59,200 nucleotides of DNA from NCBI GenBank assembly GCA_020536535.1, contig JAHLWZ010000389.1:1-59200 (forward strand), read 5' to 3'. The DNA comes from Pelomyxa schiedti. Taxonomy: Eukaryota; Protista; Evosea. A program made the position numbers and the translations under genes. The stretch's first letter is position 1. Each line of letters opens with the position of its first letter. Positions 11,318 to 13,098 of the stretch are shown one piece after another. Below the pieces are notes generated by a model. It did not search any database, had not been told where the DNA came from, and saw only the letters and a program-made list of their open reading frames with translations.

Positions 11318-13098
11318 ATGGGCAAGGACAAGATCCACATTAACGCAGTCGTCATTGGCCACGTCGATTCCGGCAAGTCCACAACAACCGGACACTTGAT
11401 CTACAAATGCGGTGGTATTGATAAGCGAACCATTGAGAAGTTCGAGAAGGAGGCTCAGGACATGGGCAAGGGTTCCTTCAAGTACGCTTGGGTCCTTGAT
11501 AAGCTGAAGGCCGAGCGTGAGCGTGGTAATCCTTGCTATTCTCTTCTATTATTTGTAATTTCCTATGTTATTGTTATAACTCTTTAAATACGTGGTTTCA
11601 TTTCCTTACAACACTCAAGGTATCACCATTGATATTGCCCTCTGGAAGTTCGAGACACCCAAGTACTACTACACCATCATCGATGCCCCAGGACACCGAG
11701 ACTTCATCAAGAACATGATTACCGGAACATCCCAGGCCGATGTTGCCATGCTCGTCATTGCCTCCGGTGCCGGTGAGTTCGAGGCTGGCATCAGCAAGAA
11801 CGGACAGACCCGCGAGCACGCTCTTCTTGCCTTCACCCTGGGAGTCAAGCAAATGATTGTCTTGATCAACAAGATGGACGACAAGACAGTCAACTGGGGA
11901 GAGCCAAGGTATGCTGAGATCAAGAGGGAGGTCAGCGACTTCCTCAAGAAGGTACACAACCCTCTACAACTTCCGGCTTGTTTACTAATCCTTCCTTAGA
12001 CCGGTTACAACCCAGACAAGATTAACTTCGTCCCCATCTCTGGGTGGTTGGGTGACAACATGATTGAGAGGAGCACCAACCTGACATGGTACCGAGGCCC
12101 AACCTTGTTGGAGGCCCTGGACCTCATTGAGCCACCAAAGCGACCAATTGAGAAGCCACTCCGCATTCCCCTTCAGGACGTTTACAAAATTGGAGGCATT
12201 GGCACTGTACTTTCCCCTTCCATGTTATCACTTCCAGACTAACATTGATCCGCAGGTGCCAGTCGGCCGTGTTGAGACCGGTGTTCTCAAGCCAGGCATG
12301 GTTGTTACCTTCGCCCCCGCCAACGTCACCACTGAAGTCAAGTCCATTGAGATGCATCACGAGGCCCTCCCAGAGGCCAAGCCCGGAGACAACATCGGCT
12401 TCAACGTCAAGAACGTCGCCGTCAAGGATATCCGCCGTGGTTTCGTCGCTGGTGACTCCAAGAACGACCCACCAAAGCAGATCGCCACCTTCGTCGCCCA
12501 AGTCATCGTCTTGGCCCACCCTGGCCAGATTTCAGCCGGATACGCCCCAGTGCTCGATTGCCACACTGCACACATTGCCTGCAGGTTCTCTGAGCTCCAG
12601 GCCAAGATTGACAGGCGAACTGGCAAGGAGATGGAGGCTTCACCAGCTGCCATCAAGACCGGAGACTCCGCACTCGTGCTGATGGTTCCAAGCAAGCCCA
12701 TGTGCGTCGAGAACTTCGCTGAGTACCCACCACTCGGAAGGTTTGCCGTCAGGGACATGAGGCAAACAGTCGCCGTCGGAGTCATCAAGAGCAAGACCGA
12801 GGGAGTCTGCCAGACCGGCAAGGTCACCAAGTCCGCCGAGAAGGCCGCCAAGACAGCCAAGCCCGCAGCCACCGGCGCCGCCCAGCCCGCCGCCACCCCA
12901 GGAGCCAAGGCCGCAACACCCGCCGCCAAGCCCGCAGCGACCGGCGCCGCCAAGCCAGCCGCCACCCCAGCAGCCAAGCCCGCAGCCACACCAGCAGCCG
13001 CCAAGCCAGCAGCAACACCGGCAGCCAAGCCCGCAGCCACCCCAGCAGCAAAACCAGCAGCCGCTGCCAAGCCAGCTGCCGCCAAGAGGGGCAAGTAA
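11318..13098 (+). CDS. EEF1A: Elongation factor 1-alpha with a C-terminal Ala/Pro/Lys/Thr repeat extension, copy 1
   Basis: [39 protein letters not shown] and [18 protein letters not shown]. Three introns, the first at 11526-11619. Tail at 12853-13095. Confidence 0.98.

Follow-up and report, generated by a model that had tools for sequence, protein, structure and literature searches.

A repetitive alanine-, proline- and lysine-rich tail on the elongation factor eEF1A of Pelomyxa schiedti, kept in two gene copies and a candidate tether to polyanions

Elongation factor eEF1A is among the most conserved and abundant proteins of eukaryotes, and its C-terminus is normally of fixed length. What, then, is to be made of an eEF1A gene whose reading frame runs on past the usual end for some 80 residues of low-complexity sequence? 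The question is posed by a gene of the anaerobic archamoeba Pelomyxa schiedti (assembly GCA_020536535.1) in contig JAHLWZ010000389.1, of which positions 1 to 59,200 were analyzed and are referred to here as the window. This gene (copy A) and a second eEF1A gene in the same window (copy B) each encode a normal elongation factor carrying a polycationic tail of about 80 residues that is predicted to be disordered. Our leaning, which draws on analogy with better characterized proteins, is that the tail would act as a tether.

Copy A is a bona fide eEF1A, encoded by four exons on the + strand (window 11318–13098). Its Pfam domains are PF00009 in exons 1 and 2, and PF03144 (GTP_EFTU_D2), PF03143 (GTP_EFTU_D3) and PF22594 (GTP-eEF1A_C) in exon 4. 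Compared with solved structures, exon 4 has eEF1A as its best match class, with E=1e-99 for eEF1A1 versus 6e-24 for eRF3 and 4e-08 for EF-Tu. Pfam and NCBIfam comparisons, homology searches and folding were done exon by exon, and exons were joined just for length and for counts of nonsynonymous (dN) and synonymous (dS) divergence. Copy A shares all three domains and the short basic Ala/Lys C-terminus with canonical eEF1As (human eEF1A1 and eEF1A2, yeast Tef1, Dictyostelium ABP-50), and the 12-residue insertion of opisthokont eEF1A is missing from its exon 3 when read against the human sequence. To the canonical protein it adds 78–81 residues at the C-terminus. This figure follows from where the human proteins stop: residues 262–460 of eEF1A1 (462 residues) align to exon 4, with residue 460 at exon-4 residue 199, and the last residue of eEF1A2, number 463, falls at exon-4 residue 202. 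The original prediction, a reading of the window made before any search, held that canonical eEF1A ends close to this point and that the frame continues for 81 residues free of acidic side chains; translation and the human alignments agree on both counts.

The tail occupies 12853–13095 (+), 81 residues in frame; its first residues lead into (TPAAKPAA)n repeats, and it ends in AAAKRGK before a TAA stop. Its composition is 40 Ala, 15 Pro, 11 Lys, 9 Thr, 4 Gly, 1 Gln and 1 Arg with no Asp or Glu (49% Ala, 19% Pro, 14% Lys), giving a net charge of +12. Lys and Thr alternate every four residues, which places one Lys in every eight; the tails of copies A and B hold eight KPAA motifs each, and that of copy A has six Thr-Pro (TP) sites, in the motif TPAAK with Lys at +4. 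Among 175 eEF1A-like proteins from the first two homology searches, 135 end 20–29 residues past the conserved VGVI, compared to about 103 in copy A (102 past VGVIK). The five clean TPAAKPAA-type units differ from one another in their synonymous codons, and Tandem Repeats Finder matched the 24-nucleotide unit at just 72% at the DNA level. A motif scan of the window found no KPAA beyond the two eEF1A genes. An AlphaFold2 model of exon 4, built from an alignment of 31 sequences, had predicted local distance difference test (pLDDT) values of 72–94 for the domain II/III core, and of 37–55, without secondary structure, for the tail (residues 200–280). The tail is thus predicted to be disordered and is a low-complexity, polycationic, probably extended Pro/Ala segment; its charge and this model are in keeping with the earlier proposal of a basic disordered module. 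A separate low-complexity open stretch at 44594–44713 (-), Thr/Ala/Pro-rich and ending in KKTKK, is unrelated to eEF1A.

The tail belongs to the mature, spliced mRNA. Logan contigs of four public runs were compared with positions 11250–13400; being contigs and not raw reads, they report presence rather than expression level and are blind to rare isoforms. Run X3 is single-cell RNA-seq, X4 and X5 come from other studies in which the kind of library is unrecorded and the contigs carry spliced joints, and the fourth run is DNA-type. All three predicted GT..AG joints are present in X3, X4 and X5. Contigs of the same three runs span 12789–12974 (or –13029) and 12945/13008–13148 without a joint, passing from domain III through the tail into the 3' untranslated region; they end at 13145–13148, and coverage stops by about 13190 in these runs. 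Confirmation from cDNA had been proposed for the tail, with its deletion by splicing or an earlier stop as the outcome to watch for; the RNA contigs hold the joints of the three introns, leave the tail unspliced, and show no such deletion at 12789–13148. The close relative P0001 (L002, L003), known from a full-length environmental transcript, likewise has a tail of AKPAA repeats at its end.

Relative to the window, every one of the four runs, the DNA-type run of the probable source sample among them, has an extra CCG after 12919; it is in frame, adds one Ala and changes TPAAK to TPAAAK. Its cause is a slip of assembly or polishing in the window, or else a polymorphism in repeat length. At 12867, 12891 and 12924, each a third codon position, X4 and X5 also depart from the window. 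Nothing was found that speaks for the tail as an artefact, be it an assembly error or a segment removed or left untranslated through a cryptic intron, an earlier stop or upstream polyadenylation; the CCG is the sole discrepancy. Such an origin is hardly credible, given that one DNA-type run and three spliced-form runs from three studies cross 12789–13148 with no joint or change of frame, that these contigs agree bar the in-frame CCG, that copy B, elsewhere in the window, has this tail too and that the P0001 transcript ends in its own. As a side observation, runs X4 (labelled bee metagenome) and X5–X9 contain the spliced cDNA form at 53–59% of sampled words, with the three synonymous tail differences, and appear to be transcriptome data of the same or a very close amoeba strain under unrelated or empty labels.

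Is the tail under selection as protein? The second eEF1A gene, found by tblastn at 49514–51324 (+), provides the comparison. Copy B has introns at the three positions of copy A, with lengths of 60, 50 and 108 nucleotides versus 94, 48 and 49 in A. The cores differ at 2 of 448 residues (dS 0.40, dN 0.006), and over the aligned codons of the tail dS is 0.82 and dN 0.06, a dN/dS of about 0.07. Differences within the tail are concentrated in roughly its first third, a proximal linker with about nine substitutions and two indels. In the distal module, 57 gap-free codons hold 28 nucleotide differences, every one of them synonymous and at a third codon position (binomial p=4e-14 for an expected share of one third), leaving zero amino-acid changes and one single-Ala indel. 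The 150-nucleotide flanks of the two genes are just 50–58% identical. Taken together, the synonymous differences and the diverged flanks argue that the tail is translated and that purifying selection acts on it about as stringently as on the core; that the tail is real, translated and selected is a conclusion we hold with high confidence. They also bear out the earlier view that the repeat pattern is kept at the level of protein and does not reflect recent DNA slippage. One X3 RNA contig carries copy-B-specific bases at 11368, 11371, 11389 and 11401, so copy B is transcribed too.

A functionless, neutral growth of low-complexity sequence at an exposed, disordered C-terminus would be compatible with the range of tail lengths among relatives (28–103 residues past VGVIK), with repeat numbers that vary by in-frame indels, and with the divergence of the proximal third between A and B. 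Neutral growth, however, predicts that about two thirds of the changes fall at codon positions one and two, whereas the 57 distal codons show 0 nonsynonymous and 28 synonymous changes between paralogs whose flanks are saturated. All three of the three paralogs seen keep long tails, and a recent gene conversion between A and B, which would revive neutrality, is contradicted by dS values of 0.4–0.8. We therefore consider neutrality very improbable. Coordinates of both copies are collected in Table 1. Two long open reading frames on the minus strand over the tail (12357–13094 and 12824–13177) were rejected as genes; they are by-products of GCN-rich codons, and the splice sites orient the gene to the + strand.

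Table 1. Features of the two eEF1A genes in the 59,200-nucleotide window
Feature	Position	Strand	Description and evidence
Copy A exon 1	11318..11525	+	Start of G domain, ATG at 11318; Pfam GTP_EFTU E=4e-14; GT..AG joint 11524/11619 (X3, X4)
Copy A exon 2	11620..11951	+	G domain; Pfam GTP_EFTU E=2e-29; joints on both sides in X3, X4, X5
Copy A exon 3	12000..12206	+	Translation; GT..AG joints 11949/11998 and 12206/12256 in X3, X4, X5
Copy A exon 4, whole	12256..13098	+	Last exon, tail read in the same frame
Copy A exon 4, canonical part	12256..12852	+	Domains II and III and normal basic C-terminus; Pfam, human eEF1A1 alignment, AlphaFold2 pLDDT 72–94
Copy A tail, variable proximal linker	12853..12921	+	23 residues; differs from copy B; pLDDT <50
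Copy A tail, conserved repeat module (TPAAKPAA)n and C-terminal end	12922..13095	+	Codon comparison with copy B; RNA contigs
Copy A stop TAA and 3' untranslated region	13096..13148	+	Up to where RNA contigs reach
Copy B canonical part	49514..51075	+	Exons 49514–49721, 49782–50113, 50164–50370 and 50479 onward; tblastn and sequence reading
Copy B tail	51076..51324	+	82 residues and stop TAG; conserved module 51151–51321

Where did the tail come from? Among named proteins the closest is P0002, a 521-residue entry on another contig of the same assembly, which NCBI already lists simply as 'elongation factor 1 alpha [Pelomyxa schiedti]'; Mastigella eilhardi (EukProt) supplies the second closest. 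Both fit the original prediction's pointer to Amoebozoa, and the types of library in the runs agree with the single-cell genome and transcriptome work on P. schiedti. P0002 is a third paralog, C, with a different intron pattern in its 3' half and a tail of 64 residues that is rich in Thr, Ala, Gly, Pro and Lys, has diverged in sequence and ends in KRGK. The environmental protein P0001 is 93% identical over domains II–III, and its tail of AKPAA repeats is free of Thr. In a maximum-likelihood tree of domains II–III (178 columns), copies A and B fall together with P0001, P0002 and P0061 (support 91/80), and these proteins extend 44–103 residues past VGVIK: 44 in P0061, 55 in P0001, 84 in paralog C and 102–103 in copy A. 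The group is sister to P0059, P0063 and P0064 (28–31 residues past VGVIK), with Mastigella eilhardi outside (28). Long tails in the Pelomyxa/Mastigella clade are thus limited to a Pelomyxa-like subclade, Mastigella being near-canonical, and all clade members compared end in GK. The tail may accordingly represent an expanded form of the short Ala/Lys-rich C-terminus common to every eEF1A, the added residues lying after the AEKAAK segment and before the terminal (K/R)GK that clade relatives keep. Stepwise expansion of this ancestral end within the Pelomyxa lineage would be the simplest reading.

Two further observations concern these relatives. The public model of P0002 has ten extra residues in the G domain (RKVYVIKGYR) between TGTSQ and ADV (JAHLWZ010000004.1, L001:3301-3420); in the DNA an intron begins with GTGGGT directly after TGTSQ, and the annotated acceptor is probably 30 nucleotides too early. 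In addition, a 107-kilobase contig (ENA ERZ21831265) holds at L004:3322-4777 the eEF1A gene of an uncultured relative, with 91% identity across domains II–III; it has the intron after TGTSQ as in paralog C and a short tail ending in KKEADAAKKGK. This gene would be a useful outgroup for dating the expansion.

Similar tails are found on other eEF1As. A search directed at the tail retrieved metatranscriptome eEF1As from the Joint Genome Institute (JGI) with cores 58–68% identical over the aligned domain II/III region and with long Lys/Ala/Pro-rich C-terminal repeats. One environmental clade has (KEAGKPAAA)n tails (for example P0026 and P0005, about 533 residues). In a larger clade the repeats are (ADKAPAKGA)n, (EKPAAKKEAAA)n and the like (for example P0018, P0206, P0249, P0281 and P0304), and the tails reach up to 137 residues past VGVI (about 115 extra) with a net charge of +10 to +19 and 53–68% Ala+Pro+Lys. 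As in Pelomyxa, the tails of such proteins (P0026, P0018, P0249, P0304) follow VGVIK and a basic segment and have a Lys-rich end; they differ in belonging to unrelated clades and in containing acidic residues, some being also rich in Glu, Asp or Gly. The two environmental clades are separate and well supported in the tree (100/97 and 99/96), and P0228, of normal length, falls inside the larger one. At least two unrelated environmental clades have therefore gained Lys/Ala/Pro tails independently of the Pelomyxa lineage, so that long basic tails have arisen at least three times, and such independent gains argue for a real and recurrent selective advantage. ESM Atlas matches to the tail-bearing environmental eEF1As are generic eEF1A clusters, a word search brought up JGI transcripts alone, the sole NCBI match lies in a mine-site metagenome, and no spliced-leader clue was seen at the 5' ends of the tailed transcripts. 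The larger clade is abundant, with members P0018, P0201–P0211, P0249, P0250, P0281, P0295, P0304, P0308 and P0309 (JGI; L007); many of its eEF1As have 520–563 residues and tails of Lys/Ala/Pro/Glu/Asp repeats, and others at 82–86% identity have a normal length of 447–456 residues.

What could a segment of this kind do? Lineage-specific basic, low-complexity tails are known on other translation proteins, such as the H1-like extensions of Drosophila RpL22 and RpL23a, the Lys-rich C-terminus of yeast eEF3 and the AKP repeats of trypanosomatid ribosomal proteins, all of them Lys/Ala/Pro-rich, and such tails are generally thought to contact rRNA. The Pelomyxa tail resembles these as a basic tail on a translation protein, although their carriers are not eEF1A. 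Our search of the literature for C-terminal extensions of eEF1A found no description of one, and neither elongation factors nor repeats come up in the P. schiedti genome paper.

The closest analogy at the level of motif is bacterial. It had been proposed that KPAA repeats are typical of nucleic-acid-binding tails such as those of Pseudomonas AlgP and PhaF, and this is correct (PMC12818456, PMC9239181). For the C-terminal KPAA region of PhaF, experiments show direct, lysine-dependent RNA binding and activation of translation, with recruitment of the 30S subunit as the authors' model (PMC12818456). DNA binding by this region is described for P. putida. The KPAA domain of AlgP binds DNA and localizes to polyphosphate granules (PMC9239181). 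Like the eEF1A tail, the PhaF region consists of tandem KPAA in a predicted disordered, acid-free tail on a folded domain; PhaF, however, is a bacterial protein with a phasin domain and has 9–22 KPAA with Lys every four residues, whereas the eEF1A tail has eight KPAA alternating with TPAA and Lys every eight. AlgP and the C-terminal domain of histone H1 are likewise Lys/Ala/Pro-rich, disordered tails that bind polyanions (DNA, polyphosphate), and the eEF1A tail is alike in make-up (PMC9239181). The eEF1A protein, in contrast, has no H1 winged helix (Pfam shows EF-Tu-type domains alone in copy A), no AlgP N-terminal domain and no (S/T)PxK motif, and what carries the tail is a translation GTPase of the cytosol. 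That the tail is homologous to AlgP, PhaF, H1 or another family was also rejected, as no Pfam profile matched at E<=10 and the sole NCBIfam match was a TonB Pro-rich spacer (E 0.5–1). The AlgP/H1 likeness of the original prediction therefore holds as composition and analogy but not as family membership, and the resemblance to AlgP and PhaF is compositional and convergent.

From these comparisons we somewhat favor a role of the tail as a flexible polycationic tether, in which the regularly spaced lysines would bind a polyanion non-specifically and the Pro/Ala spacer between them, likely stiff and non-helical, would set them apart. RNA would be the most likely target. In the human decoding complex, the C-termini of eEF1A and uS12 touch close to h5 of the small subunit (PMC10156603), so that from the ribosome-bound position the tail could reach rRNA, tRNA or mRNA. 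Tethering of this sort would keep the factor concentrated at the translation machinery. It is this geometry, together with the polyanion binding of the PhaF and AlgP regions, that leads us to prefer RNA or the ribosome among possible partners, and we name it as the main target only tentatively, at clearly less than an even chance.

Several points weigh against such a tether. The case for binding is built from analogy and geometry, and the tail of eEF1A has half the lysine density of AlgP and PhaF, with KPAA alternating with TPAA. The strict conservation of Thr, Pro and Ala as well as Lys exceeds what electrostatics would need, and hints at a specific partner or a modification. In paralog C the tail is Thr/Ala/Gly/Pro-rich with fewer Lys, and the KPAA periodicity is gone, so the charge pattern alone is not common to all copies. 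A strongly RNA-sticky tail on a very abundant cytosolic protein could be expected to hinder the turnover of ternary complexes. Finally, the convergent tails come from environmental sequences.

The main rival is that the tail strengthens or tunes a cytoskeletal role. eEF1A moonlights as an F-actin bundling and microtubule-binding protein, with domain III implicated in actin binding by Dictyostelium ABP-50, and the tail leaves the protein from that very domain. In the myosin essential light chain, a Lys- and Ala/Pro-rich N-terminal extension reaches actin. A polycationic, predicted disordered tail with a Pro/Ala spacer could in a similar way engage acidic surfaces or tails of actin and tubulin, strictly kept spacer residues would fit a ruler-like arm, and the organism is a large amoeba. 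On the other hand, the sequence is no guide to whether the target would be actin, tubulin or RNA, the convergent tails are seen in environmental clades, and the experiments cited on KPAA-type regions concern RNA, DNA and polyphosphate (PMC12818456, PMC9239181). A cytoskeletal tether is in our view unlikely.

A non-binding or regulatory role is less probable still. Here the tail would be an entropic bristle, an aid to solubility or spacing, or a scaffold for Thr phosphorylation, Lys methylation or condensates. The predicted disorder is consistent with this, as are the six TP sites, the perfect retention of Thr and Pro between A and B, and the Thr/Pro/Ala-rich, less basic tail of paralog C. The P0001 tail, however, is free of Thr, so TP sites are not kept across the clade, and the independently gained tails are strongly positive (charge computed for the larger clade) with a Lys-rich end, which favors charge-based binding over bulk. 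The absence of Thr from P0001, and a TPAAK motif that does not fit the (S/T)PxK consensus, also weaken the earlier suggestion that the repeated TP sites are regulated by proline-directed kinases.

The polyanion tether thus remains the role that we prefer. What is surprising about the tail is the strength of selection on a low-complexity sequence together with its recurrence across lineages. A natural experiment is at hand, in which an 80-residue low-complexity tail has been kept, residue for residue in its distal module, between old paralogs. It bears on what disordered, polycationic regions do at the translation machinery or the cytoskeleton and on how tightly their sequence is constrained, and it can be approached in the same manner as the recently characterized KPAA RNA-binding region of PhaF. 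It would escape automated annotation or phylogenomic pipelines in which eEF1A is cut back to its core. It is possible, though we put it forward as a doubtful extension from analogy, that eEF1A has repeatedly gained a built-in disordered, polycationic RNA-binding arm by which the factor is tethered to ribosomes or mRNA, both in the Pelomyxa lineage and in two or more further clades of eukaryotes. If so, the tails would give eukaryotes a counterpart, so far undescribed, of the KPAA-mediated activation of translation in bacterial PhaF, and the delivery of aminoacyl-tRNA would be spatially organized in another way in the organisms that carry them.

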